Shown piece by piece: positions 3,001 through 57,598 of a stretch of DNA of 64,000 nucleotides (the first letter of the stretch is position 1; each line of letters starts with the position of its first letter). The position numbers and the translations under genes are program-made. Source of the DNA: Macrostomum lignano (Eukaryota). The stretch is from positions 124,001 through 188,000 of the forward strand of contig NIVC01001371.1 in assembly GCA_002269645.1 (NCBI GenBank), given 5' to 3'. The notes below the pieces were generated by a model. The model worked only from the letters and a program-made list of their open reading frames with translations, ran no database searches and was not told the origin of the DNA.

Positions 3001-6000
3001 TACTGAGCGCCTGCTCGACTCCATTACGCGCGATACTGACGGTCGAATCTCGGTCGACCTGCCTAAGTCTCCCGGAGCGAGAAGCCTACTACGTAGAGTT
3101 CGAAAAGTGAAAGTCGAAGTTTTAGAGCGAGTCAACCTCAGAAGAGACAGTGGGCAGATCCTTCACGTCCAACCGCACTTCCCTGTCATCATCAAAAGTG
3201 AGCCGAATTCTGTAGCTGCACCCAGACCCAGACAATAACTAATAGAAGAACAAGCGGTTAGTGGGGAAGGAATCAGAAGAGAAGTAGGGGTTGAACCTGT
3301 ATTTCATACTAAATGGCAAACAGGGTAGCTGAAATGCCTGTGGCAAATTAACGGTTGTGATAGTCTGCGGGAAAAGCGTGGTAGACGAAGGGAGTCGGCT
3401 AACTCAAAAGTACGAGGCTGTATTGGAAAACAGAAAGTACAAATATTTGGAGGATGGAAATCCGACACGAATCTATATGGAGTTTCACTTCTATGACATT
3501 AGAGTACGTTTCTAGATATATGGATTGATATTTGTGACTCATGCCTTCTCGAATCATAATTTGTTAAAATCCGTATGTCATATGGTACTTTTAGTACTTT
3601 GGTTAGTTTTTGATTACTACAAGCGTAGTAAGCTTTTCTATTTGTTCTAATAAAGACTATATGAGTAAGACAGTAAATAGGATTTACTCGTAAACGAAAA
3701 AGCCCATAAACGCAATTCGTTATTCATGCCGAAGGATAATCTATATACGCTGGTATTGGTTTTGTCAGCCTAACTGAGAATAAAGCCACCCAAAATGAGA
3801 ATCCTGCCTACGCTGACTGCGAAGGGCCTGGCTGCGTGCAGCCTTAGTCTATGGGCCATAGACTATAAAGGATAAGCAAAGTGATAAACAGCCATCTAAT
3901 GTGAGAATCCTGCCTACGCTGAATACGAAGGGCCTAGCTGCGTCCAGCCTAGTCTATGAGCCATAGACTATAAAGGATAAGCTAGGATTGGCTAGTCATA
4001 TGGCTCAGAAGCTCAGAAGGTATAAAAATAAAAGAATACGACGCATAGACCAATCGATTCTCACATTGGATGGCTTTTTATCACTTTGCTTATCCTTTAT
4101 AGTCTATGGCCCATAAACTAAGGCTGCACGCAGCCAGGCCCTTCGCAATCAGCGTAGGCAGGATTCTCACTTTGGATGGCTTTATTCTCAGTTAGGCTGA
4201 CAAAACCAATACTAATTTAAACGAATATTGAAGCAACTCGCCCAGATATATGTGATATATCTAAACCCTAGATTGCAGATATTGTTTTAAAAAAGCAAAT
4301 TGAATAGCTACAGAAATTGAAGACAATCATTCAATAGAATGAACAGATTCAGATGAGGCTCAGCAAACGAAGTCTCTTTCAATTGCAGTGAAGAATAAAT
4401 AAATTTGAATGATGAATACAGCTGGTCCATCTATTGCTCTCTTTTCTTCTTTTTAGTTCAACATTGTTACAAGTGCATTGCACCCATGGTAAAATGGAAA
4501 GTCTATACTTATATTTAAACTCTTTTGTTTAAATTTAAAGCAGCTTTTCTCACTCACGAACTTAAATAGAAAGGACTGGATATGGACTTTGTTTTTTTCT
4601 AATTGACGAAAATAAATCGCATAAGCATACACTAGCTAAGTATTTTCGATAAAGTGAATTTTCCCTATTTTTAAACAAAAAACCGGTATACTTACGTCTT
4701 AGATAGTGTATTTCTATTTGTTTATAACTTAATAGCCCTGAATAATTTGGTGTAACCTAATATAATGCATTGAAATAGAACGGTATAATAAGTATAATGT
4801 TTTTACATCATAGTATAATAATATTTAAAAGATTTATGAGCAATATAACAATCCCAAAGAATCTGAATTAATCCCAGAGATAAGAAATCATCACTCACTC
4901 TGTACCGTGGAAAGCGTACTGTCGAATAGTGCTCAGAGCATCCACAGCCAGAATCTTGCTAGTGAGCGTGCGGCCGTGATACACCACTGGCTGGCCGTCC
5001 GGTCCGTCCCAGACTTCCACTGAAGGCGGACACATGGGTGAGGGGTTGGGTGCTTGGTGATGGGTTAGCTATATAGTGTTAAAAAGGAAGTGAACTAAAC
5101 TAATGTTGGACTTTAGGCAGAAGGGTGATAAGCACTGGCGAACACATCAAGGTTATTGGAGCAGTCCCCTAGAGCGTCAAAAGAATATTTTATGGACAAC
5201 TGACGTAAGCTAGGGCGCCACACCCAATTTTCTTAGAAATCGCTAGCGCTTTTAATACTCTATCGACCGAATTTGTCTATGGCAAGACCCCATTCAGCGC
5301 TATGCGTTCTCTAGAGCATACTACAGCGGATGATCCATAATCCTCCGTGTTTGATGTTCCACACGAGTCGTTTTATTGAAGTCAGAGTGAGAGGCGAGAC
5401 AGAGTTAAAAAGGCCACGCAGCTCCTTTTGAAATTGGATAGGGGTAGCTGGAATTGAAGGATACAGCTAGAGGCTTAAAACAATGTACTTTTAGCTAATC
5501 CCAGTGCCCTCAAGGATCTAAGCACAGCACAAGACAATAAGTGCTGGAAAGTGTACATACAACTGCTCTCACTCACACTCAATATATCGAATTCGGTCTT
5601 TCAGAGCTCGCTCGTAGCACTCGCAGCTGGATTCGCTTCTCAGCTGATCGCCGGTCAGAAATCTGGAAATATTGAAACTGACTAATTTTTGTCCCCACCT
5701 GTCCAGATTCTGGTTTTTAGATGGTGTCTAGAAATAGACGTTTAGATGTGCACCGTAACAGGCAAATGTTTTCTATTTTTAGTTTCAGCTATTTCTGACA
5801 TTCCCAAATTCCCAGATGCAAAACTTGTCATATCAATTTACATGTTTGCCAATTCCAAAAGAATACCATATCGATAAAAGTAGTTAGATCGATATTCACT
5901 GGAGGGCTGTAGGCCCCCTGGTGCAACGCCTTCCAATGCACAACCAGCGCTGGCTCCTGAGCACACAAGCTCGCCAATGCTGTACTCAGGCACGCACTCA

Positions 6001-9000
6001 TACACACGCTCACACAGGGTGTACAGCGGCCCTGACTGTCTAATCGTCAGACATGTACACTCTCTGTGCCTGGAGTCGATGAGAATTCTATCTGGGTTGC
6101 TCACGTTTTGTGAGACGCGCTGATGAAGTAGTGCGCTAGAGGCTGATCCATGTCCTGGCAGACTCTGCGATGCTCGGGGTCCATGATGTCGCAGTGGTCA
6201 GACTGCAGGTAGGCAGTGAAACCTGGTGAGGTTTTTATTACTTTTTAATTAGCTAATTATGAACTAAGACATGCTTTAACAGCTTCTCTAGTAATTTTTT
6301 ACTAATTAGTCCTATCGAAATCCCACAATCGCAGATCTAGTCCCGTTGAAATCCAATAATTACAAATCCAATCCAATCAAAATCCCTTTACACCAATAAA
6401 ATCCCATAGAATCCCAGTCCTCATTGAGCACTGTTCTCACTCACCGTCGAGTCCCAGCTGACCGCAGCGCCTGCCCTCGGCAGACGGCTCAAACTGGTTG
6501 ATCAGCTCAGCGCACTGCTCCTTGGTGATTTTCGGATTCTGGGTCAAGGCAATTGGCGGCAAGTCAGGTGACTATTTGCGATGCAAGAACAACAAGTACA
6601 AAATACACCATCTAGCGTAGGGGTCGGCAAATTGTCTTACTTCAAGAGCCAGACAGAGAACCTAGCCCATGACTGCGAGAATGGGGAGGGAAGAGAGGAG
6701 AGAGATGAGAGATAGGAGAAAGGAGAGGCGAGGGGCGAGAGGTGAGGCGAAAAGAGAGGAGAGGAGATATGAAACAGGGGAAGAGAGGGGAGAGAAGGGA
6801 TAAGAGAATGGAGAGGAGAGAAGAGAGGACGAGAGGAGAGGAGAGGAGAGGCGAGTAGAGGTGAGGAGAGGAGAGGAGAGGAGAAGAGAGGAGAGGAGAG
6901 GAGAGGAGAGGAGAGAAGAGAAGAGGAGAGGAGATTAGAGGAGAGGAGAGGAGAGGAGAGGAGAGGAGAGGAGAGGAGAGGAGAGGAGAGGAGAGGAGAG
7001 GAGAGGAGAGGAGAGAGGAGAGGAGAGGAGAGGAGAGGAGAGGAGAGGAGAGGAGAGGAGAGGAGAGGAGAGGAGAGGAGAGGAGAGGAGAGGAGAGGAG
7101 AAGAGAGGAGAGTAGAGGAGAGGAGAGGAGAGAAGAGAAGAGAGGACGAGAGGAGAGGAGAGGAGAGGAGAAGAGAAGAGAGGAGAGAGAAGAGAAAAAG
7201 AGAGAGATAATATTAGAGAGAACAGAGCTGGGAAGAGACAAACCTTGAGCAGGCCGGACTGCTATTGCGAAGTTTCGAAGGACCCGAGGGCCGGACAGAG
7301 ACTTTACGGACCGCATGTGGCCCGTGGTCATTTTCTGACCTTTCTTATATTTTTTACTTTAAGTGAACACGAAGTCAGAAATTAACGTGGTGCATATTAT
7401 AACATCTAAACTTTCCTGTTCTCAAAATGGTTCGGCCCTATTGGATTCAATTTTGGGTTACAATAAACTCCTTAATCCCCATCATCGCCGTATCATCTCA
7501 CCCCCTGCTCTGCCTCGATGAAGCTGTGCAGATCGCCCACTGACAGGCAATCGCCATCTGATGAGTATCTGCGGGCAGGCAGTCGATGGATTCTGTCAGT
7601 CAGGGACGCCTAGAAAAGCTAGAAATCTGGATTAGAAACAGAGCTCTGACTTCACGTGGGTCAATTTTTTCATAATGAATTTATTTAGAAATTTGAAAAA
7701 AATACAATTCATAGAAATATTCAGTAATTATATAGAAAATTTTTTCTGAAGCCTCGAGAATATTTGATTTTTCATCACTATTATTTGAGAACTTTGTAAG
7801 GGTGCCGGTGCAGCTGACGGGAGCTAGATGATGAAGCTTATCGCAAGATGAGATCGGTGAGGCTGGAATTATCCCGCGGGAGTCCCACAATACAGATCCG
7901 GATCGAGAGATTTGGGGGTGGTTTGCGCAGCTGGGATGTGCTCAAGGCCGGTGCACAGCCCACCTGTTGATCAGGGCGCTCACGCGATGCTTAGTCAACA
8001 CAGGTGATACCTGCTGGCCGACTGCGATTTAAGAAATTCTCTTTGACAATTCTCTCTGCCGACAGGGATGTGAATTTTTATCAGTAAAAGTTCTGCTCAA
8101 ATTTTGCCATTATGAACTCAATTTCGGCCTTTAAACTGAGCTTTTGTGTGCTATGCTATGTTGCCAATATTTTTATTGTATAAACTATGGGAAAGTGCTT
8201 GTAGCTAGGGAAGTGTTTTGCAGATATGGGGGAGTGGATTGCAGATATTGGGCAGCTGATTGCAGATATTAGACAGCTGATTGCAGATATTGGGCAGCTG
8301 ATTGCAGATATGGGGGAGTGGATTGCAGATATGGGGGAGCGGATTGCAGATATTGGGCAGCTGATTGCAGATATGGGGGAGCGGATTGCAGATATTGGGC
8401 AGCTGATTGCAGATATTGGGCAGCTGATTGTAGATATTAGACAGCTGATTGCAGATATTGGGCAGCTGATTGCAGATATGGGGGAGTGGATTGCAGATAT
8501 GGGGGAGCGGATTGCAGATATTGGGCAGCTGATTGCAGATATGGGGGAGCGGATTGCAGATATTGGGCAGCTGATTGCAGATATGGGGGAGCGGATTGCA
8601 GATATGGGGGAGCGGATTGCAGATATGGGGCAGCTGATTGCAGATATGGGGGAGCGGATTGCAGATATTGGGCAGCTGATTGCAGATATTGGGCAGCTGA
8701 TTGCAGATATGGGGGAGCGGATTGCAGATATTGGGCAGCTGATTGCAGATATTGGCATCGGACTGCAGCCCAACCTGACTAGCAGGAAGTAGATCTCGGG
8801 CCTGGTGGAAATCTCCTTGAAGAGGCTCGCGAACTCGGCGCTGTTCAGCCGGCCGGGCGATGCCACGGGATTCAGCAGGTCCGCCTCCTGCAGTTTGCAT
8901 GAGAAGGGCTCGCACCGTTTTTACAATTTGAGGACAAGATTATTGTAAAGCATCCTTAACGCAATTGCAAACCTTTAGTTTTGTCCGAATTCGAATGGAG

Positions 9001-12000
9001 TTCACGCCGGAGTTGAATTTCTTCACCAGCTGGATTGCCTCCCGCTCGTCCAGGAGGCCTTCGCTGTCTGGGGAGGCCGCTGAGAACAGCTCCTCCAGCC
9101 AGCTGCGGGGGATTTACAGGTAGTTATATGAACTGACCCCTATCTTCTCTTAGAAGTCATGATTTTGTGTCTAATGCGATTAAGGGTCAACTGACTCCGG
9201 CCTTCTTACCAAAATCTGCCATAGAGTCTGACGATACTAGGGGGTCAACTGACCCCTGACTTCTATCAAGGGTTGAGGATACTACGGAGGTCAACTGACC
9301 CCTGACTTCTATGAAGGGCTGAGGATACTAGGGGGGGTCAACTGACCCCTGATTTCTATGAAGGGCTGAGGATACTAGGGGGGGGGGGTCAACTGACCCC
9401 TGATTTCTATGAAGGGCTGAGGATACTAGGGGAGGGGTCAACTAACCCCTGACTTCTATGAAGGGTTGAGGATACTAGGGGAGGGGTCAACTGACCCCTG
9501 ACTTCTATGAAGGGTTGAGGATACTACTGGGGAGTGACCCCTGACTTCTATGAAGGGCTGAGGATACTAGGGCGGGGGTCAACTGACCCCTGACTTCTAT
9601 GAAGTGTTGAGGATACTACGGGGGAGTCAACTGACCCCTGACTTCTATGAAGGGTTGGGGATACTACGGGGGAGTCAACTGACCCCTGACTTCTATGAAG
9701 GGTTGGGGATACTACGGGGGAGTCAACTGACCCCTGACTTCTATAAAGGGTTGATGATACTACGGGGGAGTGAACTGACCCCTGACTTCTATGAAGGGTT
9801 GAGGATACTACGGGGGAGTCAACTGACCCCTGACTTTTATAAAGGTCTGAGGATACTAGGGGGGTTAACTGACCTCTGACTTCTATACGAGCGTAAAAGT
9901 CTGCTTTAAAGGCTGGGGTGATCAAGTGGGGGGTCAATTGACCTCTGGATACTGTGGAAGTATCTGTATTTTGTCCTATCCCAATATACATGTACTGCAA
10001 ATCAAATACGAGCTATGTCTGCATTGGTATCTGAGAACACTAAGGAGAGGTCAATTGAACCATTATGAATACATGTAAAAGTCTATTTTAGCATTAAAGA
10101 AAACAAAGGAGGTCAACTGACCCCCTGATTTCTAGATTTCTATGAAAGGTACACCGTAGTATCTGGCGATAGTAGGGAGGTACAACTGCCTCAACTGACT
10201 CCTATGATGTCTACAGCTACATCAAAGGTCAGCGGAATCTGGAAGACCCCTTGAAACATTGTAGAAAGTTGAAGAGCTCTTACCGGTCCCGCATGAGCTG
10301 CGGCCTGTCGTGTCCCGCTTCGCCAGTAGCATCTGGGTGCAATATTAAAGATAGGTAATCATTGATTGTGCACAGAGCACTCTAAGCACATATAAGTCAT
10401 CACCCCTCAGATTACTCAAGTTATCACCCCTCAGATTACTCCCTCCAACCAACGCCTCTGACGCCCTTCCCGATCAGATCGCACCTTTCTGGCCATTGAT
10501 GAGGCAGCCCAGGCCGGTGACCCACACGCTGGCAGCGTCCACCAATGCCGTCACCAGGTCGATGCAGCGCTGCTTGGGTTTCGACGTGCCGCCGCCGATT
10601 CTGCCCGAAGTCTCAATCACGATGGTGAAGGCGCAGTCAGGCGACTGCGTGGCGGCGACGCTGCTCCCGCGAAGTGCCGCCGTAGTCCGACCACGGCGGA
10701 CTTCTTTGAGATCGGCGACTGACACTGAGTGATTCAGTGAGGGTGGGGTTGGGGGTGGACAGAAGGGGTCTGGGACTAACGAGCTTAAACTTTGATTATC
10801 GCGTGACCCCAACGATGCGAAAACCTTCAGCTCTATGGGAATTGGAAATGCACTTGAGCGTGATGCCAACTTTTTAAACCTTCTTCGCACTGGTTATCAA
10901 ATTCTTCTCAATTCTGGAATTCCTCAGGTTATTTGAATCTAAAATGTATTTGGTAAAAAAGTAGCCTTTCAAAAGTTAGGGTTTTAGACTTTTTACTGGC
11001 AGTGTCTTTTGACTGACAGTGTCTTTTGACTGGCAGTGTCTTTTGACTGGCAGTGTCTTTTGACTGGCAGTGTCTTTTGACTGGCAGTGTCTTTTGACTG
11101 GCAGTGTCTTTTGACTCCCGGTGTCTTTTGACTGGCAGTGTCTTTTGACTGGCAGTGTCTTTTGACTCCCGGTGTCTTTTGACTGGCAGTGTCTTTTGAC
11201 TGGCAGTGTCTTTTGACTGGCAGTGTCTTTTGACTGGCAGTGTCTTTTGACTGGCAGTGACTTTTGATTGCCAGTTGCGGACTGCCGACGATTTAAGGTT
11301 AGGGTTTAGGTGGGTTAGGGTTTAGGTGGGTTAGGGTTTAGGTGGGTTAGGGTTTATGTGGGTTAGGGTTTAGGTGGGTTAGGGTTTAGGTGGGTTAGGG
11401 TTTAGGTGGGTTAGGGTTTAGGTGGGTTAGGGTTTAGGTGGGTTAGGGTTTATGTGGGTTAGGGTTTAGGTGGGTTAGGGTTTAGGTGGGTTAGAGTTTA
11501 GGTGGGTTAGGGTTTAGGTGGGTTAGGGTTTAGGTGGGTTAGGGTTTAGGTGGGTTAGGGTTTAGGTGGGTTAGGGTTTAGGTGGGTTAGGGTTTAGGTT
11601 AGGGTTTAGGTGGGTTAGGGTTTAGGTGGATTAGGGTTTAGGTTAGGGTCGGCAGTCGAATTGTGTCAGTCAAAAGTCGCAGGCCTAAATAATTGATCGA
11701 TTTTGGTTTTAAGCAAAGTACAAATGGAGACTGCCAAGAGATAGATGACAACTCAATAGAAATTAAAGCTCCATTAAAACTGGTCTGGAAGATTCCATTA
11801 AGGTACAGAATTGAAAGACGAAATAAAAATAGGAAGAGTATAAAGAAGTCAAATGCAGCTCAAACACTCGGGAATTTTTTTTCTGATCGACAGCTCATAT
11901 AGCTTAGCCACTCGCTTTCTCAGATCCTCTGTCCGAGCAGTTGACATTGGGATGAAAGCGGATCAATTTAAGCCCAAAAAATCCACCCAGCCAGCCCTAA

Positions 12001-14172: not shown

Positions 14173-14599
14173 TAAATTAGAGTTCATCATACAACTCATG
14201 ATGTTTTTTGAGAGAAAACTCACATGTTTTTATAAGGCTGACAGATCAAACGACTGTGATTGCGTTATATTATAGGTTGTTTAATGATGTTTAATTTTTA
14301 CCAGGTCTTTATCAGGGATAATGATTGAAAAGCACGCTAATCTAGAAGTCGATTCAAAAGCGCGTCAAAAATTGAAAAAACGCGGTTTTAATAATATCTT
14401 AGTTAAAACAAATCTAAAATCAATTTTTTTAAATTAGCATTTAATTGCTGCATAACTACAATAATTTTACTAAAAAACAAAAATATATTAAAACTACAAT
14501 AAATTAATTAGAGTATTTTATACAAGAAACGCCCTAAATTTTGGATTCGTAGAATCTACGTAGAAACTTTCCCAAAGCTTTAATAACGAGAAATACCTA

Positions 14600-15070
14600 G
14601 TGAAAAAGCACCTTAAGATACACAGAGAAAGAGAACTTAGCCAAAAGCTAGAGAATCAGCAACATATTAAACTCTACAAAAACGCCTATCTCTACAAAAA
14701 AATCTGCAGGCCCGACCTTTCAGATTACTTTCCATGCACTTTTAGAAACAAAAAATTCCTAACAACCCTCCTAAAACTGAAATGCGAAATTACACCCAAC
14801 ATTTTATCTCATGAAGCATGTAGACTGTGTGGAGCGAGAAATGGTTCCGATATCCTACACTACTTGACCGAATGTCCACAAACTGAAAAGATTAGAAAAA
14901 AATACTTCTGTCAGTACCTCTTAAATGACAAGCAAGTACACAAGTTAGGATATGCTACAAATGAAAAAAGAGTCAGAAAAGAGCTCACTGGTGTAGCTAA
15001 AATATATGAAGTCATGAATAGCTAAAACAGTTATGCAAACTGAAACAGATATATCAGCAGTGTAATAAAT
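14600..15070 (+). mobile_element. 5'-truncated LINE fragment (ORF2 C-terminus with CCHC zinc knuckle)
   Basis: ORF 14600-15025 contains CRLCGARNGSDILHYLTECP (C-x2-C-x8-H-x4-C), followed by a short 3' UTR with AATAAA. Confidence 0.7.
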
Positions 15071-16367
15071 CCACTTTTCATTTGTTTATTCATTTACTGT
15101 CTTTTTAATTTCCTATTTAATTAGCATTTAATTAGTATTTAATTAGTTTCCCATCTAATACCTATTTAAATCGTCGTTATTCATTTTTTATCAGCATTTA
15201 ATTAGTATTTAATTAGTTTCCTATCTAATACCTATTTAAATCGTCGTTATTCGTTAAACGTAAAGTTCTTTCAAAGTATGTTCATGTTCGTTTTTCATGC
15301 TTTGAAATATCACGCGCTTGCAAAATACTACATCTTTTTACAAAAAACACTCTTTCAAATACCTTAATAATTTTACAAATATCGTAACTTGCATCATAAC
15401 TCGTGTAAAAATTTAACCTTTTGAACAAATTTAACCTTTTGAACTTAATCGTAATTAAACAACTAATGCTAAAATATCTTAAATACACAGAAATATACTG
15501 GCCAAACAGGCTTCTTGCCTGAGCCAACTTACTACTACTACTACTACTAAACAATAAATCTTAGTGCATAGTGCCAGTATGCTATGCTTTGTCTAGTCCA
15601 GACTCTATTATATTATCTTAACAGAAAATTTTGCAAAGTGGTATAAGTTATACCATAGTTATACTATAACTATAGCCATTTCAAATTCATTTCAAAAAGT
15701 TTATTTTAAGTATAAATTTTAAGCTTTTTCTGAAGTTTCTAGTTTTAAGCTTGTAATATAGTATTTAAACTAATGTTTATCAATATTACTTTTCTAGTAA
15801 AGATAGTATTGGCAAGGAAGATGAAAAAGCAACCAAATTATCTGCCAAAAATATTTGGCAGATATATTTTATAGAAATAATATATAAGTTATAGGTAGAT
15901 ATTATAGCCTAGTGGTTAGCAAAGGCAGATCTAGAAAAAATTTATATGGGGCAAGCTAAAATAAGCACTATAACCTACTATTAGAAACTAGACCTTGCAT
16001 AGTTATAAAGGCCAACTTTTACTGCCACAAAAAACTTAAAACTATATTTTGGTTAAAACTACAACTGTGTTGCACTGTCATTTCCAATCACTTTTGTCTC
16101 TAAAATAGAAGGCACTAACTTTATATTAACTTGAAACAAGTGAAAGTAAAAATAAAATAGGAATAGGAGAATAAAATATTGAAATACGGATAGAAAGACA
16201 CAATAAAAATAGAAACCCACTTTGTTTGTGTATTCCCTAAAAATTATTTGAATTTTTTATAAGGGGATAGAAGCTAAAGGACGACTGCGAGATCAAAGAA
16301 AAGGTTAGAAATAAATAAGGCAAAGCCATACAGGGATGTAAGAGAAAATATATAATGATAAGAATGC

Positions 16368-18071
16368 TTATAATAGCCAATGTGGTTGGCCATGCCTATT
16401 CCTAAAATACTGGCTTATTCAAAGTGCTAGCATTCCTAGACAATCAGGGTACTGTTTTCAATTTGGTTCTTGTTTGATATATGGCATTGATTGTATAGCC
16501 AAACATATGTAGCATTTCAATAGAGCTTTGGTTAGCAAATGTTATACTATAAGGCCATCACCTATAGGACTAATTGCTATGGGATGGCCTACCCTGATAG
16601 TGAAATGGCACTTGCTTCTGCTAGTCTCCTCCTCCAGGATACTGATTGCTTTTCCTAGAAATGCCACAAGTCTTGGTACCTCCATGCTAATGGTAGACAA
16701 TCTAAAAATTCTAGACCAGAAGCAGCAATAAGCAAAATCCAAGTTTCTAAAACTAGCATAGCATCTTCCAACTGGCCAGGTAAGGGTTTGTTGCTGAATC
16801 CATATAGTCTATGCCATCTATGCTCTTTGAGTATATGACCATTGTCAATGGATTTAAAACCACCTACTGCTTGCCTTTCCAATAGACACATGGTAAGTTC
16901 ACATAGGCAGCCTGCCCAGCAGTGTGTAGGAGATATATAGTATTTGTCCTACTGCTCTTCTTGTCCACAAACTTATAAGCAAGCACCTTGCCATTCCTTA
17001 TAAAAGCTACTGCAGTTGTAGTTGCTGCAGCAATAGTGGGATTCTTTGATTGCTACACATAGTGCCTATGAGCCAAGTTCTATTTGCTAGCAGCCAATGC
17101 AACATTAACCAGCTGTCTATAAACACATTGTAATTAATGTTAGAGTTCACAGTATAGCTTGGCCAAATTTTGCTCATCAACAGAAAGGTTGCTACAGTTG
17201 AGTCCTAGTCCAAATTGTATATTTGCATGTTCTGTGGAGTGAATTGCAAAATTCTATAAGTAGCCAGTCTCTAACTCATATAGGTAGTAAAGTTCTGCTC
17301 TTCTTAGTTGGGATATACTGCTTGAATATCAGACACCCTTTGTACAAGACTAGAATTTTGTTAATGGAAAAGTGCTAGTGTGGCATATAGTTATTGCTGC
17401 ATACTTGCTGCAGATAGTATAAAAATGGCTAGATTTTGGCCAATGGCCTTTCCTGGACATCCATGCAGTCATAGAAACAAAGGCAATAAAGCAGCTGCTT
17501 GAATCTATCTCTTAAGAAGGCATTGGGCATGGACAGAAAGGAGTAATAGAGGGTCTTGGCTCTAGTAACTACTGATATTTGGCTTTTTGTCTATGCCTAT
17601 CAACAGAACAATCCTGAATAGCTTCCTCACCTTATTATTTGTGCAATCTTTCCAGTTCTTTGCCAGCTTTGACAACTAGTGCATTAATGCACTCCTCAAA
17701 AATCTTCCATGCCCTACAATTTGTCCAGGTCTTCATACTTGCAATAATTCCATTAGTGAGATATAGACTTAGAAACTCCTCTTTGTTTCCATTAGCTAAA
17801 GCTGGAGGCATCCAATCTAGGCAAACCCCTAGTATTCCTAGAAATTCAGCTTTATTTGGCATAGCATCTATTCTAGCCTGAACCAACTGCCACTCTGGTA
17901 CATTACCAACTTCTTTGTCTCTATGGCTTTTTCTTCTTTGCCTTCTTCTTTTATCAACTTGTCTTTCTCAATTCCATAACAACTTAAGTAAGTGTTATTA
18001 GGCAAAATTTTCTGGTATTCATTCTCAAATTCCATGGAAAAAGCAATATTGCAAGAAAGTGCAGTAGCCAT
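16368..18071 (-). mobile_element. Full-length-scale piggyBac (PGBD4-like) transposase relic, heavily C->T/G->A mutated
   Basis: Manual translation through stops gives FLSLYLTNGIIASMKTWTN; RDRFKQLL..KI*PFL; HFSINKILVLYKGCLIFKQYIPTK (=SIDE..V.YKGR..FKQYIP.K); ETGYL*NF; VFIDSW..GTMCSNQ; LAYKFVDKK; SIDGIDYMD (=MGGVD..D); WKMLC*F*KLGF (=RK..KW..KL.F); and a C-terminal CYIC..YPDC..L Cys-rich domain. TIRs and TTAA TSD not identified. Confidence 0.85.
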
Positions 18072-19936
18072 TGAGACAAGAAATATATAATTATAGTATA
18101 AGTGGCAAGAAAATAAGAGTCTATTTGATTGGAATTGAAAGAGAACAGTAAGTGTAGCACTGGGCCCAAAACAAGTATAATTATAAGACAGGGGAGTGAA
18201 AATAAAAGGAGGGGTAGAATATACAACTAAAAGAGGCAAGGTTGAAGAGCCAATTAGAAGGCAGTGAGGGAGAGAAATAAAAATAACAAGACTGAACTAG
18301 ACCAATAGGGATAAAACAAAGTAAACAGAGATAAGTGCAGATAAACTAAATAAATGACTAAGAAAGTTGCATCAGAGAGAAACTAGAGGAAAATGTGGTG
18401 CTGTAACAGCAATTGTAACAACTATCAACTAGTGTATATCCTATTAGAAATAGGGGTGATGCCAAGCTCCACCTTTTATATCAAGATTAATAATGACTTG
18501 AGCAAACTTGGCAAATTTTACTTTAATATTAGTATACTTTTTGCCTAGCTTGAATTTTTTTCTGCAGATCTAATAAGATCTGACAGGATTTTGCAAGAAA
18601 GTTATTTATTTTTTCTATGTAATTTTTATTTTATTTTATAATTTTAATAAATTTTTATTTTTCTTGTTATCTTGTAAGATATCATAAGCATTTCTTAAGA
18701 TCTTATAAGATTTTGTGAAAGATATTTTAAGTTGTTGTTTGATTTATGGCAACCTTTTAGTCTTCCTTTGGTCTGCAGATGACTGCACAGGTTGTTCCCT
18801 GCATGTCACAACTATGTTGTTTTGTATAACTGAATGGCTGCTCTTATTAGATACAAGTTAAAATATAATAGCAGCAACTAAACTTGCCTATAGACAAGTC
18901 TGTGAAGTTAAAAAAATGAAGAAATATTATTTGAAGTCATTTGTATAATTTAGACTGCTATATAATTTGTATTTAAAAATTACTACATGACAGATAAGCT
19001 TGATTTTAATGAGTATTTTAATATAAAAATAGAGTTAGACCAAAACTGAAACACAAAGAAAGCTGTGTAAAACATTGCAGTCAATAAACATATTGCTAAA
19101 TAATACTGTTAATTACTTGTTGCCTATTCTAGAAGGACAGTGCTAAAGAAAAAACAATGCAACTAATAGTATAAAACAAATTAGTTTTATTCATAATAGG
19201 CAACAAATTTATTCAAAATGTAACTAGCATAGTGTAAAGAATACAAGTAACAATGACTGCACAACAATTGTGGGAAATGTACAATAATAAACACAGTAGA
19301 AAAGGCACAATGTTCAACAAAAAGCACAGGCAGGTTGCAGATACCAGCATGACATTGCTTGTGTAAGTGTTAGCAAAACTTCCAATGTACTAAAAATGGT
19401 CTGTCAGTATCTAGGTAGGTAGGTATGTGATTGATTTTAGCAAAAACGGCTTAACTGATTTTGTTCAAACTTGATTTAACCGATTTAATCCTTTTTTCTT
19501 GTAATAAATCCACTTTTTTAATCCACAATAAATCCTTGTTTAGATCCATCATCAATAGCTTTACCATTGGATTCTGCATTTGGACTACATATTTGGTCAT
19601 ACTTGTTAGCTAAATTGATGGCACGTGGCACCATCAGTATCACAGTCAGAAATAATGCCTTCAGCCAAAACTTCCTTTAATCCTTGAACCTTTGTAATGC
19701 CACTGGTGCATAGAACAGTGACCATATGCTTTTTTGGCCTTTCGTTGACAGCAATGGTTGAGCCTTGAAATGAATAATAAGTAATGTTTTTCCTGTGTTA
19801 AATTTTGTTGCTTGGCATAAGCATCCTATAGGCTGTACTTATAACTCCAGCAGAAACCTTGACTGTGTACTTGTATAGTGCAATTAACTACATATTGCAA
19901 TATCATTCAGTTGTCAAACCTTGTCAACTTCAGAGT

Positions 19937-20972
19937 ATGCCAAGACAGCTAGTAAGCTACTATGACACACTTGTCACCCAATCTGATTATGACACATTGC
20001 ACGATGGCATGTGGCTAAATGACAACATCATCAGTTTTGCATTAGAATATATTGATCGCACCAAATGTCGCGGATCCAATAATGGAACTCAATGGATCAC
20101 TCTGTTAGATCCCACTGTGTGCCAGGCTGTTAAACTTACTGGACAGGCGGTTGAACTGCTGGCTCAGCGAGATCTTAGAGCTTGTGAGTTTCTTGCTAAT
20201 ACAAGCCTGGACTCAATGCTATCGTTTTGTATCGATTCATCTGTGTTTTTGCCTTGACATCTAGTTAATTCACTTCACATATTGTGAGTTTTAGGGGTTG
20301 GAGAAGAGTTTTGGAGGTTGTGAATTTTGGGGGTTGTGAACTTAGAGGTTTGTGAATTTACGGGTTTGTGAATTAAGGCCTTTGTGAATTTACGGGTTTG
20401 TGAAGTTTTGGGGGTTGTAAAGTTTGAGAAGTTGTGAATTTCGGAGTACCCAGCCTAGTCACTGTAAAGTATACGCGCTATTATTTAAAACAGCCGCAGG
20501 CTCGTCCAACACTAGAGGCCTCCTAGGCGTGGTTAGCGACAGCGATTCGCCCGACCAGCCAGGCGGCACTCACTGGTCTCTGCTGGCCATCCGCTACGTT
20601 GCCAATAGCAACGCCACCAACGGAGCCTGTAGAATTGTTGACGCTCTGCATTTCGACAGCCTGTCCGGCAGCAATCGGCACTCGGCTGCTGACCTGGCCG
20701 CCGCTCTGCACCCGGCCCTGTGCGACTGTCCGATCGCATTGCCGACTGTCCGAGAGGCGGCCGGCTGCGCTAGGCAGGCCAACAGCTCCGACTGCGGCGC
20801 ATTCGTTCTGCTGTACGCTGAACAGCTGGTCGACGCCGCCAGCCCGGACGATTGGCCGTTGATGTCGGCCGGCGGCGACGGTCGGGCCAGCGAGGCTGTC
20901 CGTGAGCTGCGGGCGAGATATCGGCGATTGATCGAGCAGTTGGCTGCTGATGGGCCGTTGTATAAGGATTAG
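19937..20972 (+). CDS. SENP8: Sentrin/NEDD8-specific protease SENP8 (NEDP1/DEN1), 2 exons
   Basis: Exons 19937-20183 and 20500-20972. Motifs LVSYYDTLVTQSD...WLNDNIISFALEY, GGTHWSLL (His), HFDS (Asp) and QANSSDCGAFV (Cys) show an intact Ulp1/C48 triad. Confidence 0.93.
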
Positions 20973-25500: not shown

Positions 25501-28500
25501 TACAATCCCTACTAGGCTACAACCCCTACTAGGCTACAACCCCAATTAGGCTACAATCCCTACTAGGCTACAACCCCTATTAGGCTACAACCCCTAGTAG
25601 GCTACAACCCCTATTAGGCTACAACCCCTACTAGGCTACAACCCCTATTAGGCTACAACCCCTATTAGGCTACAACCCCTATTAGGCTATAACCCCTATT
25701 AGGCTACAACCCCTATTAGGCTACAACCCCTATTAGGCTACAACCCCTATTAGGCTACAACCCCTACTAGGCAACAACCCCTTCTACGAGTTCTTCTGCG
25801 AGTATATACAAAAATGAACCTTACTATTAGTAAGGTGTGCAATTAATCCGTGGGCAAAAAATTTAGCTGCTAGGCGAAAAGCATTGACTTACTGTTTTGA
25901 GTCGGAGTCCTCTGTATTTTCTTACTGTTATGAAATTAATTACGCTACATATCGGAACGTTGATCCACCGCTGTGAGGTAGGCTAGGATTTCTAAAGCGA
26001 TTTCTGGAGCCTCAAACGGAACGTCATTTAAATCAGTTGCATTTTAATTGCATATAAATCCTAGAGCAGATAAAAATAGAAATTTAACTCAATAAATAAT
26101 GATGATTTCAGGACAACCTGGCACTGTTCATACAGACCTGCGATCAGGTGTTTAACGTGCCAAAATTGTCCATGTTCGATGTGACTGATGTTGTCGAAGA
26201 TCTGTCAGAAAAATACAATCCGTACGTGCTTGTTAAACTGCGCAACTACTTATAGTACTTTAACCGTTTTTATCTGTACCCTATTTTTGTGTTAATACTT
26301 CTTGGCACTGATGAGAGGACGCAGTCTACGAAGATGAAAGGCGCTGCAAAAAGGTGTGCATTGTATTTTGAAAATAGAAATTCCTATTATCTTAAATCCC
26401 CATTTCCTATCCTGGATCCTGAATACAATTCCGGACACAAAATCCCATTCCTGACACAGAATTACATTTCTGACACTCCAATTCCCATTCCTGACACAGA
26501 ATTCCCATTCCTGACACAGAATCCCATTCCTGACACAGAATCCCATTTCTGACCCTCGAATTCCCATTCCTGACACAGAATCCCATTCCTGACACAAAAT
26601 TCCCATCCTGACACAGAATCCCATTCCTGACACAGAATACCATTTCTGACCTTCGAATTCTCATTTCTGATACAGAATCCCATCCTGACACAGAATCCCA
26701 TTCCTGACACAAAATCCCATTCCTGACACAGAATCCCATTCCTGACACAGAATCCCATTCCTGACACAGAATCCCATTCCTGACACAAAATCCCATTCCT
26801 GACACAGAATCCCATTCCTGACACAGAATCCCATTCCTGACACAGAATCCCATTCCTGACACAAAATCCCATTCCTGACACAGAATCCCATTCCTGACAC
26901 AGAATCCCATTCCTGACACAGAATCCCATTCCTGACACAGAATCCCATTCCTGACACAGAATCCCATTCCTGACACAGAATCCCATTCCTGACACAGAAT
27001 CCCATTCCTGACACAGAATCCCATTCCTGACACAGAATCCCATTCCTGACACAGAATCCCATTCCTGACACAGAATCCCATTCCTGACACAGAATCCCAT
27101 TCCTGACACAGAATCCCATTCCTGACACAGAATCCCATTCCTGACACAGAATCCCATTCCTGACACAGAATCCCATTCCTGACACAGAATCCCATTCCTG
27201 ACACAGAATCCCATTCCTGACACAGAATCCCATTCCTGACACAGAATCCCATTCCTGACACAGAATCCCATTCCTGACACAGAATCCCATTCCTGACACA
27301 GAATCCCATTCCTGACACAGAATCCCATTTCTGACCTTCGAATTCTCATTTCTGATACAGAATCCCATCCTGACACAGATTCCCATTCCTGACACAGAAT
27401 CCCATTCCTGACACAGAATCCCATTCCTGACACAGAATCCCATTCCTGACACAGAATCCCTTTCCTGACACAGAATACCATTTCTGACCTTCGAATTCTC
27501 ATTTCTGATACAGAATCCCATCCTGACACAGAATCCCATTCCTGACACAAAATCCCATTCCTGACACAGAATCCCATTCCTGACACAGAATCCCATTCCT
27601 GACACAGAATACCATTTCTGACCTTCGAATTCTCATTTCTGATACAGAATCCCATCCTGACACAGAATCCCATTCCTGACACAAAATCCCATTCCTGACA
27701 CAGAATCCCATTCCTGACACAGAATCCCATTCCTGACACAGAATACCATTTCTGACCTTCGAATTCTCATTTCTGATACAGAATCCCATCCTGACACAGA
27801 ATCCCATTCCTGACACAAAATCCCATTCCTGACACAGAATCCCATTCCTGACACAGAATCCCATTCCTGACACAGAATCCCATTCCTGACACAGAATCCC
27901 ATTCCTGACACAGAATCCCATTCGTGACACAGAATCCCATTCCTGACACAGAATCCCATTCCTGACACAGAATCCCATTCCTGACACAGAATCCCATTCC
28001 TGACACAGAACCCCATTTTATTTGACAGATTCTCACCTGCCTGCTACGACTGCACCGGTTCGTAGACTTGCGGCCATCAACTCCGCGTCTTGAACTGTCC
28101 GCCCTCATGGCTGTGCTTGGCGGTGGCGGCGGAGGTGGAGGCAGCCGACCCTCCAGCGCGGGTTCCGGGAAAAGAGAATCCTTAACTAGCGACGCCCCTC
28201 CAGCGGTCCAACTGACCCAATCCGTCCGAACGTCAGCTGCCGCGTCTAACGCCAATCCGTTACAGTTTGTCAAGCCGGAAGGCAACAAGCTGGTCCAGAC
28301 GGCCAGGCATCAGATTCAGGCTATTCAACGGAATAAAGAGGAGTTGGCTGAGACTGCCGCGGCAAAGGCAGCCGCCGCTGAAGCTTCCAGCGATGCCGAC
28401 GGAGACGCGTGGATTTCGGTAGAAGTGTTGGGATTTTTCTTGCAATACTAGTAGAGTTGACATGCTATCAATTGCTGGTATAAATCACTAATCTTTTCTG

Positions 28501-31500: not shown

Positions 31501-34500
31501 CTGCAATCGGGGTCTTTGTGAAACTGCAATCGGGGTTCGTTGTGAAACTGCAATCGGGGTCTTTGTGAAACTGCAATCGGGGTTCGTTGTGAAACTGCAA
31601 TCGGCGTCTTTGTGAAACTGCAATCGGGGTTCGTTGTGAAACTGCAATCGGGGTTCGTTGTGAAACTGCAATCGGGGTCTTTGTGAAACTGCAATCGGGG
31701 TTCGTTGTGAAACTGCAATCGGGGTCTTTGTGAAACTGCAATCGGGGTCTTTGTGAAACTGCAATCGGGGTCTTTATGAAACTGCAATCGGGGTCTTTGT
31801 GAAACTGCAATCGGGGTCTTTGTGAAACTGCAATCGGGGTTCGTTATGAAACTGCAATCTGGGTCTTTGTGAAACTGCAATCGGGGTCTTTGTGAAACTG
31901 TAATCGGGGTCTTTGTGAAACTGCAATCGGGGTCTTTGTGAAACTGCAATCGGGGTCTTTGTGAAACTGTAATCGGGGTCTTTGTGAAACTGCAATCGGG
32001 GTCTTTGTGAAACTGCAATCGGGGTCTTTGTGAAACTGTAATCGGGGTCGTTGTGAAACTGCAATCGGGGTCTCTGTGAAACTGCAATCGGGGTCTTTGT
32101 GAAACTGCAATCGGGGTCTTTGTAAAACTGTAATCGGGGTCTTTGGAAAACTGAAACCGGGGGCTTTGTGAAACTGCAATCGGGGTCTTTGTGAAACTGC
32201 AATAGGGGTCGTTGTGAAACTGCAATCGGGGTCTTTGTGAAACTGCAATCGGGGTCTTTGTGAAACTGCAATAGGGGTCGTTGTGAAACTGCAATCGGGG
32301 TCTTTGTGAAACTGCAATCGGGGTCTTTGTAAAACTGTAATCGGGTCTTTGTGAAACTGCAATAGGGGTCTTTGTTCAATAAATCTTTGCATAGAGGTAC
32401 TATACAGTTCTCAGAAATTTTCAGTCAATGCCTTATTCAGTTTTTACTGTTTCTATTATTACATACTCATTTTTCGCGCAGTCATTCTGGTCAGGAAGGT
32501 GAGACAGCTGTGTCTTGGACAGTAACTGCTTAATCAGTACCAGAGAGCCCGGACTGCCGTAGCTTTCCAAGAATCGTCAGGGTAGCTTTCGAATTCCCGC
32601 GCTTTGTTGAAAATTGCATGTGTTTGTTTTTCTAACCATGCTACTCATAGCTCGTATGAGTAGGATGTTTTGTAAAATTGAGCGAAATTTTTCCCCCGCT
32701 TTTTCTGCTTTCTATTAGAAAGTTCAGCTCAATAGTGCAGCATACATAAATCTCGCATTGATGATTGCTGTGAAGATACTTTATAGATAGAAACCTGAGC
32801 TACTACTAGTAGTATGCGTGTGCAATACGCTCCAACTAATCGGTGATCTGCTTAGACTGCTGAGGAAAATTGGCATGCCGAATGTTGCTTATGAGTTTCA
32901 ATTGCTATAGGAGAATGCAACCGTGTTGTAAAATTACAATTATAATTTTTTGATAATTTTTTATAACAAATTAATTCAGAGAGAGCCGTCGCCACGTCGT
33001 CAGCTGGTGCAGCATCCGTCATCTGCAACGCAGCTGTTGCGTCAGTCGATGCCAGACAATGCTATTACTGGCAAGGACCCGCTTAAGGTTTGCTTGCCGC
33101 AATTTTTTCTCATCGTCCTACTTAACTAGTAGTATAATTAGAGCAAATTTAATTCTTTTTTATTTTCTTCTCAGAATCTAACAAACGGCGACGGCTCGTC
33201 GCAGCAGAAGCAGAGTCTGCAGCAATCGCCGCAGAAATTGCTGCAGAATCAAACAATAATGGAACAGCATCAGGATCAGAGATTGTCACGATTGGCGTGA
33301 GTGAATGATTGTCAAACTTTATTGATTTTAAGGTGTTCTTTTAAAGTCGGGGCCGCTGTACACCCTGTGTGAGCGAGTGCATGAGTGCGGGCCTGCGTAC
33401 AGCATTGGCGCGCTTGCATGTGCTTAGGAGTCAGCGGAATGGGCAGAATGGCCTCAGCGCCAGTTGTGTGGGTTATGATGTCGCCGTTTTCTACTCAATA
33501 ATAATAATAATAATTGATTACACCTGCCCTTATGGGCCAGATGTGCAACCGACAGCTCAGCCGCAGCTATTGCGCAGTCGTGATTCCGACGCTCTGACCA
33601 CTAGGCTACAATCCCCTACTCAACTTCTGCTCAAATTCCTCCAACAGACGCCGAGGCGAGCAGCTGAAGCACCGAAGTCAGTCAAGCGACAGCGGCCGAC
33701 TCAGCCGTCAGGAGCCAGGAGATGATGAAGCTCCGTCAGCTGTTGTTGCTGACCAGCGAGATTTCGACACCGAGTCACCGATCTCACCTCCGCAGCAACA
33801 GCCGCCGCCGCCGCCGCTGCCGCCCAGAATTAGCAGTGGCAGCATTGGCAATCTTCTACTACAGTCAGCGGCGCCAGCGCCCGCGCTAGTGGCGCCTCGG
33901 TCAACAGGCGCCAAGCAGCAGCGGGAGCGCCCGCTGTCAGTTAGCGGCAAGAAGCGCTGCTCGCATTGCTTCACGGAGCTGGGTAGGAGCCACTGTGTTA
34001 TGTTCTTTGAACTGCTGGGTTCAGCCTTGTAAAGACTGGGTTCGGTCTTGTAATGAATGGATTAGATATTGTAATGAATGGATTAGATATTGTAATGAAT
34101 GGATTAGATATTGTAATGAATGGATTAGATCTTGTAATGAATGGATTAGATCTTGTAATGAATGGATTAGATCTTGTAATGAATGGATTAGATATTGTAA
34201 TGAATGGATTAGATATTGTAATGAATGGATTAGATATTGTAATGAATGGATTAGATCTTGTAATGAATGGATTAGATATTGTAATGAATGGGTTAGATAT
34301 TGTAATGAATGGGTTAGATATTGTTATGAATGGATTAGATATTGTAATGAATGGATTAGATATTGTAATGAATGGATTAGATCTTGTAATGAATGGATTA
34401 GATCTTGTAATGAATGGATTAGATATTGTAATGAATGGATTAGATATTGTAATGAATGGATTAGATCTTGTAATGAATGGATTAGATCTTGTAATGAATG

Positions 34501-35604
34501 GATTAGATATTGTTATGAATGGATTAGATATTGTAATGAATGGATTAGATCTTGTAATGAATGGATTAGATCTTGTAATGAATGGATTAGATATTGTAAT
34601 GAATGGATTAGATCTTGTAATGAATGGATTAGATCTTGTAATGAATGGATTAGATCTTGTAATGAATGGATTAGATCTTGTAATGAATGGATTAGATCTT
34701 GTAATGAATGGATTAGATCTTGTAATGAATGGATTAGATATTGTAATGAATGGATTAGATCTTGTAATGAATGGATTAGATATTGTAATGAATGGATTAG
34801 ATCTTGTAATGAATGGATTAGATATTGTAATAAATGGATTAGATCTTGTAATGAATGGATAAGATCTTGTAATGAATGGATTAGATCTTGTAATGAATAG
34901 ATTAGATATTGTAATGAATAGATTAGATATTATAATGAATGGATTAGATCTTGTAATGAATGGATTAGATCTTGTAATGAATGGATTAGATATTGTAATG
35001 AATAGATTAGATATTATAATGAATGGATTAGATCTTGTAATGAATGGATTAGATCTTGTAATGAATAGATTAGATCTTGTAATGAATGGGTTAGATATTG
35101 TAATGAATGGGTTAGATATTGTAATGAATGGGTTAGATATTGTAATGAATGGGTTAGATATTATAATGAATGGGTTAGATATTGTAATGAATGGGTTAGA
35201 TATTGTAATGAATTGAATTCAGTCTTGTAATGAATGCATTCGATATTGCAGTAAACTTAAAATTAATAAGATTCAGTCAATATAATACTGTAATAAACCG
35301 GTAAGAATGGGTATCCTATTTATATAAGTATAAGCCTAAAATCGCTATATTTAGAAGGCTGCTTAGTTATCCATCACCTCCATCCCGCTGGCTGTCAATC
35401 ACCGCAGGCTCTGGCGGCGCCATGGCCATTGAGTCGCTTGGCCTGTACTATCACATCAAATGCTTCAAGTGTTGCGTGTGCAGCCTCCCGCTTGGCAACG
35501 GCACCACCGGAGCTGATGTCCGAGTTAGACGGGACCGACTGCACTGTCCGGCCTGTTTCAGCTCGGACGAAGGTATAATGAGCTCCGTGCTAGGCGTTGT
35601 TTAA
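22269..35604 (+). CDS. LMO7: LMO7/LIMCH1 (smallish-like) protein: N-terminal calponin-homology domain, low-complexity middle, C-terminal LIM domain; last exon uncertain
   Basis: Exons 22269-22501, 22953-23022, 26112-26221, a probable short exon near 26320-26353, 28029-28418, 29030-29202, 29411-30440, probable small exons near 31230, 32980 and 33175, then 33648-33982 and 35408-35572. Motifs: LTWIERSTG..LSDGVQLCELLNALRPGCVKKINR..DNLALFIQTC (CH); NPLQFVKP..WISSLNCWKERRR; PLSVSGKKRCSHC..LGSGGAMAIESLGLYYHIKCFKCCVC..LG.G..GADVRVRRDRLHCPAC (LIM). Confidence 0.88.
22545..22725. repeat. (AGT)n trinucleotide microsatellite
   Basis: Read directly. Confidence 0.95.
23310..23890. repeat. Pyrimidine-rich minisatellite, ~47-bp unit
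   Basis: CTCTGACCCCTGAGCCTTTTCTCTCCTGACCCCCTGACCCCTTTTCC repeated. Confidence 0.9.
25186..25480 (-). mobile_element. tRNA-derived CORE-type SINE, near full length
   Basis: Reverse strand reads TAGCCTAGTGGTT (A box) ... GGTTCGATTCCC (B box) ... TGTCCTTGAGCAAGACATTTAACTCTGCATTGCTTCAGTTCACCCAGCTGTAAAATGGG (similar to the MIR CORE domain) ... (ATT)n tail. Confidence 0.85.
25460..25780. repeat. 17-bp minisatellite (ATTAGGCTACAACCCCT) made from the SINE 5' end
   Basis: Contiguous with the SINE head; the unit matches CTAGGCTACAATCCCCTACT seen once at the end of the 33.6 kb SINE copy. Confidence 0.9.
26400..28015. repeat. 1.6-kb minisatellite, 19-bp unit (CCTGACACAGAATCCCATT) with interspersed variant cassettes
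   Basis: Read directly; explains the overlapping SGMGFCVRNG ORFs. Confidence 0.95.
28520..29000. repeat. Minisatellite, ~23-bp unit (CCCTGAAACACACCGACAATCTC)
   Basis: Read directly. Confidence 0.9.
30585..31175. repeat. Minisatellite, 15-bp unit (CCCCAAATTTCATAT)
   Basis: Read directly. Confidence 0.92.
31455..32375. repeat. Minisatellite, 23-bp unit (CTGCAATCGGGGTCTTTGTGAAA)
   Basis: Read directly. Confidence 0.95.
33497..33622 (-). mobile_element. Internally deleted SINE copy (tRNA head fused to 3' tail, CORE missing)
   Basis: The tail segment GATGTGCAACCGACAGCTCAGCCGCAGCTATTGCGCA joins directly to the head segment GTCGTGATTCCGACGCTCTGACCACTAGGCTA. Confidence 0.75.
34050..35215. repeat. 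Minisatellite, 21-bp unit (GTAATGAATGGATTAGAT[A/C]TT) in the intron splitting the LIM domain
   Basis: Read directly. Confidence 0.95.
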
Positions 35605-57290: not shown

Positions 57291-57598
57291 AGATACTATA
57301 AACACTGTGTTTATAGTATCTGTGGGCTAGAGTTTATTCGTCACGTGACTGATAAATAGAATGAATGGCAGTCAGGCCCATACAGATAAGAGAGGACAGT
57401 TCGCTGATAAGACAGGGCCGGGGGCTCCATTTAAACCCTGGTTAGACTTCACTAGCCAGCCCTGATCTTCCTTCGCACACTGGTTCAGGCTGGACTCTGT
57501 GTCAGGCATATACTAATCTTCAGTTAACAAGTCGCTTAAACGCTTTATTTGATTCAAAAAAGACTAAAGAAAGACATCAATCATTTAGCTAACTGAAC

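Follow-up and report, generated by a model that had tools for sequence, protein, structure and literature searches.

How does an animal genome that otherwise keeps its cytosine–guanine dinucleotides (CpG) come to hold kilobases of DNA from which they have all but vanished? The question is raised by a 64,000-nucleotide (nt) stretch of flatworm contig NIVC01001371.1 (hereafter the window), in which a relic of a piggyBac transposon lies inside an AT-rich domain, 15452–19446, that retains CG at only three positions (16187, 16282 and 16288). The window as a whole has a GC content of 0.44 and a CpG observed/expected ratio (o/e) of 0.71; for the domain, these values are 0.33 and 0.03. Base composition predicts about 111 CG for the domain and the window's background o/e of 0.73 about 81 (P of three or fewer ~7e-31), and a vertebrate-like o/e of 0.22 still predicts about 24 (P~7e-8). 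The longest CG-free gap of the window is found here (3159 nt, 16288 to 19447), and our count agrees with an initial annotation of this DNA, which had reported no CG from 16290 to 19446 and three between 15452 and 16290. That annotation attributed the domain to a regional cytosine-directed process resembling fungal repeat-induced point mutation (RIP) and acting on both CpG and CpA. Context counts against an intact relative of the relic support a process that would have hit both dinucleotides in the domain; as read from these sequences, it is gradual, recurrent and CpG-led, and its non-CpG component, though real in the data, is of uncertain cause.

The piggyBac relic and its intact relative

The relic lies on the minus strand, where one frame matches the Pfam family DDE_Tnp_1_7 (PF13843, E 3.3e-10), and it also matches piggyBat and T. 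ni piggyBac in the PDB, so the annotated piggyBac relic is real. The stitched relic translation has a sole close protein, BOX15_Mlig002331g1 (P0001) of Macrostomum lignano, which is intact at 576 amino acids (aa), carries PF13843 and PF13842 and is 65% identical over 97% coverage. Its gene (L001:5001–6731, assembly GCA_002269645.1) has a GC content of 0.557 and is CpG-rich (121 CpG, o/e 0.91), and the surrounding element is bounded by 27-nt inverted repeats (L001:4613–4639 and 7076–7102) that are partly deleted in the window. The relic has a GC content of 0.37 against 0.56 in the intact coding sequence. Eleven of its 13 stops derive from CAG→TAG/TAA or TGG→TAG, and the catalytic VDE of the intact protein now reads INK (17365–17357), with the first catalytic Asp changed to Asn, as the annotation had proposed for this site. 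With neither catalytic residues nor inverted repeats intact, the relic is to be judged a dead piggyBac-superfamily copy. Further lesions that had been deduced by eye from conserved motifs reappear in the comparison: KGR→KGC (CGT→TGT), DR→DY (CGT→TAT), Trp TGG→TAG at 16755–16753, Met ATG→ATA in MGGVD at 16821–16819 and Cys TGC→TAC/TAT. The relic's residues are absent from the intact copy, which upholds the ancestral codons assumed for these sites. A stop in the motif KIRP, taken earlier for a double CpG change, has to be reinterpreted: the intact copy has Gln at this position, and the lesion is CAG→TAG, a CpA→TpA change.

Over 2357 aligned positions, relic and L001 differ at 569, and 373 of these differences are C:G→T:A (from intact to relic) with 48 in the reverse direction, bearing out the early impression that C:G→T:A dominates. 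All 136 aligned CpGs are lost in the relic, 45 to TG, 43 to CA, 27 to TA and the rest to other outcomes. Across the dead piggyBac and about 1.5 kb around it, every original CpG is gone and about a quarter of the other cytosines have turned from C to T. Per cytosine, over all aligned sites, C→T follows the 3′ neighbour (CpG 0.56, CpA 0.32, CpT 0.21, CpC 0.13); the influence of the 5′ neighbour is weaker, both at CpG (TCG 0.75, ACG 0.60, CCG 0.51, GCG 0.38) and overall (A/T > C > G).

Three lines of evidence fix the direction of change: counts restricted to codon positions 1 and 2 of the intact open reading frame (ORF), residues common to P0001 and a distant homologue, P0002, and one-way codons, whose reverse change cannot occur in a working gene. 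At codon positions 1 and 2, C→T reaches 0.49 at CpG, 52/139 at CpA, 28/149 at CpT and 14/136 at CpC (CpA versus CpT, p=6e-4; CpA versus CpC, p=1e-7), with T→C at 11/539 and transversions at about 3%; C→T at CpA thus runs at ~18-fold the T→C rate. These are the counts by which, as set beforehand, CpA/TpG→TpA was to be compared with other non-CpG transitions, and it is the commoner change. Residues identical in P0001 and P0002 give the same order (CpG 0.57, CpA 13/29, CpT 7/47, CpC 4/47), with T→C at 2/172. Among one-way codons, 8 of 24 Gln codons show CAR→TAR, 4 of 12 Trp codons TGG→TAG (the third G is changed in 0 of 12) and 4 of 10 Met codons ATG→ATA.

These tests bear on a possible artefact of the reference, whereby the relic's own subfamily would have been rich in AT and poor in CpG from the start, or the GC content of the M. 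lignano copy would have risen, and the apparent mutations would be differences between lineages. Having a single reference copy invites such a reading, but the changes are equally common at all three codon positions and in the non-coding ends, they destroy the catalytic Asp and introduce 13 stops, the pattern persists at residues shared with the distant outgroup, and flanks that lack homology to the element are CpG-free too. We regard an artefact of this kind as extremely improbable.

The two strands carry similar loads (174 C→T against 196–199 G→A), and the two types of change are interspersed, forming 183 runs where 185 ± 9.6 are expected, with no strand-coordinated runs. Nor is there a gradient of damage along the relic, 24–36% of G/C sites being hit throughout. 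A rate set by the 3′ neighbour, on interspersed strands, fits recognition of the DNA methyltransferase type rather than APOBEC, and the interspersion argues against a processive single-strand deaminase. AID/APOBEC-like deaminases do exist in invertebrates and give clusters of C→T, which is the case for editing of single-stranded DNA by such an enzyme; here, however, the rate follows the 3′ neighbour (G > A > T > C) and not a 5′ T, C or WR, the balanced and interspersed changes depart from the 5′ motifs and strand clusters that these enzymes predict, and the target is a cut-and-paste DNA transposon with its flanks, which has no cDNA stage. Editing by such a deaminase seems to us scarcely credible. 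Symmetric CWG (plant-like CHG) targeting was considered separately and rejected, since CAG is hit at 0.41 and CTG at 0.21.

Flanks, further patches and a younger insertion

Absence of CpG extends past the piggyBac homology on both sides (Table 1). The right flank gave no Pfam match in any of six frames; translations of the left flank, and of the second and third patches described below, were checked by eye and held nothing recognisable. A second copy of the domain flanks is absent from the window and from L001. At the right edge, depletion fades gradually through a shoulder; at the left it stops abruptly against a CpG-normal stretch resembling the 3′ end of a long interspersed nuclear element (LINE), which suggests that this edge is probably an insertion junction. 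The LINE-like ORF is without a Pfam match, and its identity as a transposable element (TE) is by eye only.

Several observations concern the surroundings of the domain. A perfect 18-nt direct repeat, TGTAATAAATCCACTTTT, flanks it at 15061–15078 and 19500–19517 (4439 nt apart); chance occurrence within 6 kb is unlikely, and both copies might be remnants of one LINE tail, or the repeat might go back to a long duplication. Just inside the edges, 15 nt from the left and 4 nt from the right, lies a 20-nt inverted repeat (15467–15486 and 19423–19442; 75% complementary, with a perfect 9-mer, TGCTAAAAT/ATTTTAGCA). Judged from this edge repeat, the piggyBac may be nested in a larger, outer element that comprises the entire domain. 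Directly to the right, exons of an Ulp1/SENP-type cysteine protease (Peptidase_C48) occupy 19859–20257 and 20424–20972 on the plus strand, and the partly CpG-depleted shoulder takes in the presumed promoter together with the initial ~140 nt of exon 1.

Is AT-rich DNA in this window simply poor in CpG? Elsewhere in the window, such DNA has a CpG o/e of 0.6–1.2 (control sets 0.78–0.85). The remaining long CG gaps are tandem repeats or minisatellites, bar two non-repetitive cases, the second and third patches of Table 1. A further control comes from duplicates of ~95% identity, in which transitions affect 6 of 171 CpG-involved sites and 20 of 940 elsewhere, indicating no strong CpG hypermutability; this segmental duplication (53454–55202 and 57596–61020) carries coding pieces of the phosphorylase superfamily (PNP_UDP_1).

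Table 1. Coordinates and properties of the CpG-erased domain, the piggyBac relic and related features of the window
Feature	Position	Strand	Properties
CpG-normal stretch with the look of a LINE 3′ end	14564–15450	+	open 153-aa frame; 70-nt and 18-nt tandem tails
CpG-erased AT-rich domain	15452–19446		3 CG in 3995 nt
Left CpG-free flank beyond piggyBac homology	15452–16011		0 CG versus 10.9 expected; 560 nt
piggyBac relic	16012–18470	−	DNA homology to whole M. lignano element L001:~4590–7075, 72% identity
Transposase frame remnant	16377–18035	−	ATG kept at 18035–18033; 13 aligned stops, 11 deletions, 1 insertion
Right CpG-free flank beyond piggyBac homology	18471–19446		0 CG versus 18.9 expected; 976 nt
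Right shoulder, partial CpG depletion	19447–19999		4 CG versus ~21 expected; extends into first Ulp1/SENP-like exon
Second CpG-free AT-rich patch, left half	45449–46371		0 CG versus 12.6 expected
5′-truncated reverse transcriptase fragment (non-LTR type), GC-rich, inserted in second patch	46351–47361	+	half-decayed
Second CpG-free AT-rich patch, right half	47366–48271		0 CG versus 19.6 expected
Third CpG-poor AT-rich patch	49000–49800		2 CG versus 14.4 expected

Dinucleotide composition points the same way where no homologue is to hand. CpG-free segments outside the relic have a TpA o/e of 1.04 (0.96–1.13) against 0.80 (0.75–0.86) in AT-rich controls and a GpC o/e of 1.83 against 1.45, and TG/CA is not raised there, although these dinucleotides are the recipients of all former CpGs; in the left flank, the corresponding values are 1.24 for TpA, 2.2 for GpC and 0.87 for TG/CA. 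Raised TpA without raised TG/CA gives independent support for a flux from TG/CA to TA within the patches. TpA/ApT is 1.05–1.09 in CpG-free DNA and 0.94–0.96 in controls. The composite index (CpA+TpG)/(ApC+GpT), which should lie below 1.03 under RIP, is 1.47–1.50 in the relic and 1.24 in the other patches.

The second patch is interrupted by a younger insertion, a fragment of a non-long-terminal-repeat (non-LTR) element encoding reverse transcriptase (RT), which allows the process to be viewed part-way. Searches with its ORF returned relatives all at or below 77% identity, mostly on 1-kb metagenome contigs; M. lignano is the only named source of relatives for both transposons, and neither has a further copy in the window by blastn and tblastn. 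Three related metagenome copies (L002, L003 and L004, from ERZ2272135, JGI 3300037309 and ERZ28573561) are CpG-rich (o/e 1.0–1.16) and 76–83% identical in DNA to the RT element; their presence in three unrelated environmental assemblies suggests that Macrostomum-like animals, or horizontally spread elements, were in the samples. Using these copies as outgroups, we find that 35 of 80 consensus CpGs are kept, 27 have become TG, 16 CA, two other dinucleotides and none TA, a loss of ~56%. Where all three outgroups agree, C→T affects 33/122 CpG cytosines, 2/59 at CpA, 1/57 at CpT and 5/83 at CpC (8/199, or 4%, at non-CpG sites in all), with T→C at 1/135; in the same test, CpG sites of the outgroup copies are not hit in excess. 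A preference for W-CG over S-CG is common to relic and RT fragment. The earlier statement that nearby TEs are CpG-rich therefore stands for the LINE-like 3′ fragment at 14.5–15.45 kb, which is CpG-normal, and falls for this RT fragment at 46.4–47.4 kb.

Gradual decay or a burst

That the younger insertion is only halfway through a decay limited to CpG speaks for slow and sustained action rather than for a burst; methylation with subsequent deamination would be of this kind. The relic's age can be scaled on the rates of the RT fragment: by non-CpG C→T, it is 6.1 times older, ~2.9 of 136 CpGs are predicted to survive and 0 are seen (P=0.054); by T→C, it is 2.8 times older and ~24 are predicted to survive, again with 0 seen, although T→C counts are small and this clock is not decisive between burst and sustained action. 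All three CG that the domain has today are in new sequence, lying in an insertion or where the alignment is poor. Had removal stopped early, T→C at TG/CA would be expected to have created 10.6 new CpGs, where there are 3 (P=0.0065); this deficit, together with the half-decayed RT fragment, favours a continuing process.

Such timing weighs on the idea of a true RIP-like defence, in which the cytosines of a repeat would be actively converted in a single germline episode or a handful of them, by an enzyme that also leaks into the flanks and might be a deaminase or a methyltransferase like RID/Masc1. The relic shares a good deal with the products of RIP in Neurospora and other ascomycetes: a repeat hypermutated by C:G→T:A, strong AT enrichment, nonsense codons made from CAG and TGG, damage reaching 0.5–1 kb past the repeat, and dependence on the 3′ neighbour, as for the DNMT-like RID. 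Divergence by T→C and transversion is also low (2–3%), so that the element looks young bar its C→T load. The strict label nevertheless does not hold. CpG is the main target, ahead of CpA; CpA/TpG is undepleted, as the composite index shows; strand-coordinated runs are absent; the decay appears gradual, as in the younger TE, and the deficit of new CpGs points the same way; the sole known relative of the relic, in the M. lignano assembly, is intact and CpG-rich, which may count against mutation of every copy above a threshold of length and identity; and RIP machinery is known from fungi only, whereas the host here is an animal. Another fungal likeness is the RIP-like TpCpG hypermutation of Pucciniomycotina (PMC3318451), which is also a CpG-centred C→T process in TEs with a 5′ T preference, resembling the W-CG preference seen here; it differs in that ACG is nearly as affected in the relic, CpA is a clear second target and the taxon is an animal. 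Taken together, these points make an episodic defence of the RIP kind very unlikely.

A plainer account would have the relic undergo ordinary CpG-only methylation decay with age, in the style of vertebrate repeats, its non-CpG C→T changes coming from a strongly AT-biased background mutation that happens to favour CpA. The non-CpG clock (RT CpG:non-CpG = 7.7) is borderline compatible with this (P(0)=0.054), the CpA:CpG rate ratios of relic (at most 0.24) and RT fragment (0.11, from 2 events) overlap, and C→T is higher beside A/T than beside G/C, as expected if local melting of DNA promotes deamination. Yet CpA is hit twice as often as CpT, although both neighbours form weak pairs (the p=6e-4 given above), and no such preference is seen in the RT fragment of this genome, the CA:CC odds ratio being 5.2 in the relic and 0.84 in the fragment (z about 3.6). 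The T→C clock, for what its counts allow, would leave ~24 CpGs, and there are none. Were the C→T:T→C ratio 11–17 throughout the genome, neutral DNA would be pushed below 15% GC, whereas unmarked AT-rich DNA in the window stands at 27–35%, and TpA enrichment is confined to the CpG-free patches. We consider CpG-only decay unlikely.

A candidate agent and comparison with known systems

What the sequences show is a directional, strand-symmetric spectrum that depends on the 3′ neighbour, a younger insertion in an intermediate state of decay, and other AT-rich DNA of the window with nearly normal CpG content. We think it probable that patches of transposon DNA were densely and locally methylated at cytosine in the germline and then decayed by deamination, the oldest of them showing a genuine CpA component as well. 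Most of the genome of this macrostomid-like flatworm would be left unmethylated, small transposon-derived patches being the densely marked exception. As methylated cytosines deaminate to thymine, a patch would lose its CpG first and completely, and one marked longest or most heavily would go on to lose non-CpG cytosines, in the order CpA > CpT > CpC. The piggyBac copy would have been inactivated in this way, its GC content falling from 56% to 37%, its catalytic Asp turning to Asn and 11 stops arising from CAG or TGG, while the mark spread over 0.5–1 kb of adjacent DNA. More generally, the locus suggests that cytosine methylation or deamination in this genome is confined to small transposon patches, with most other DNA being spared.

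We infer the agent to be 5-methylcytosine (5mC) made by DNMT1/DNMT3 in the germline, with the CpA part reflecting non-CpG methylation. CpG-specific, strand-symmetric loss to TpG/CpA that is confined to marked regions, as found in the relic and RT fragment against the controls, is what decay of 5mC predicts. DNMT3 enzymes methylate non-CpG sites in mammalian oocytes, neurons and embryonic stem cells in the order CG >> CA > CT > CC; the mutational order of the relic matches it, a link that we draw from the spectrum. Wasik et al. (2015) is reportedly the primary report of 5mC in M. lignano. According to PMC11292947, PMC9246332 and PMC10658182, this species retains both DNMT1 and DNMT3 and its bulk 5mC is low; how methylation is distributed across the genomes of free-living flatworms is described there as unknown, and no later methylome paper on the flatworm pattern was found in the literature searched.

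Methylation-driven decay of CpG in TEs is known from vertebrates, plants and some invertebrates (PMC7431005), and the present case shares with it symmetric change from CpG to TpG/CpA, confinement to TEs, grading by age and faster loss of A/T-flanked CpGs. It differs in its totality (o/e 0.03 against about 0.2–0.25 in vertebrates), in forming sharply bounded kilobase patches in a genome that is otherwise CpG-normal (o/e 0.7–1.0), in its large non-CpG C→T excess (CpA > CpT > CpC) and in its host, a flatworm lineage whose methylation pattern is still undescribed (PMC9246332).

Four points weigh against germline methylation followed by deamination as the full account. Erasure to an o/e of 0.03 goes beyond what vertebrate genomes with heavy methylation show. 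At non-CpG sites, the C→T:T→C ratio is ~11–17, which would be unusual for spontaneous decay of 5mC unless methylation of such sites is heavy. The RT fragment lacks the CpA preference (2/59 against 5/83 at CpC), and the CpA component may accordingly be a separate process, or an effect of time or chromatin state rather than of the same enzyme. Finally, the spectrum of the relic was taken against one intact copy (P0001/L001) and not a family consensus. A more active version of events would have Macrostomum-type flatworms possess a germline defence that itself hypermutates silenced repeats, with a DNMT-family enzyme or deaminase converting CpG and CpA cytosines to thymine across patches and flanks. 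Animals would then have a counterpart of fungal RIP in place of passive decay, a reading that we hold to be quite unlikely.

Other features of the window and wider meaning

The window is rich in minisatellites, with more than 30 arrays, several of 1–1.6 kb (26428–28017, 34027–35248 and 37098–38512), and interstitial arrays of a 16-nt unit at 11297–11643 and 1174–1451 contain telomere-like TTAGGG/CCCTAA motifs. Host exons include a mitochondrial carrier of the SLC25A33/36-like type (44639–45232, minus strand; Mito_carr, E 9e-26) and a LIM-domain exon (35305–35601, plus strand), both CpG-normal. A protein search with the conserved carrier exon gave best matches of 40–46% identity, with no flatworm sequence among them. 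An ORF at 39489–40097 (plus strand) begins like a signal peptide and continues with KR-QMFRYG in ~16 tandem copies (a 24-nt repeat, 39702–40081); it has no Pfam match and the exact protein is without a database record, and it looks like a neuropeptide precursor yielding amidated (Q/H)MFRY peptides.

The CpG-erased locus can be regarded as a mutational fossil of the flatworm methylation pattern. It predicts sparse, kilobase-scale, transposon-centred marking, able to erase every CpG, within an otherwise CpG-normal genome. A heritable CpA-biased C→T footprint is not familiar to us from other animals, and we know of no mutational footprint of non-CpG methylation in animals that is as large and heritable. 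M. lignano is a tractable model in which RNA interference and transgenesis work. Should non-CpG methylation or active deamination lie behind the footprint, one could test whether transposon defence in animals includes a mutagenic, RIP-like arm, and how far such an arm influences AT-rich 'junk' DNA and neighbouring promoters, of which the shoulder that touches the Ulp1/SENP-like first exon may offer an example.

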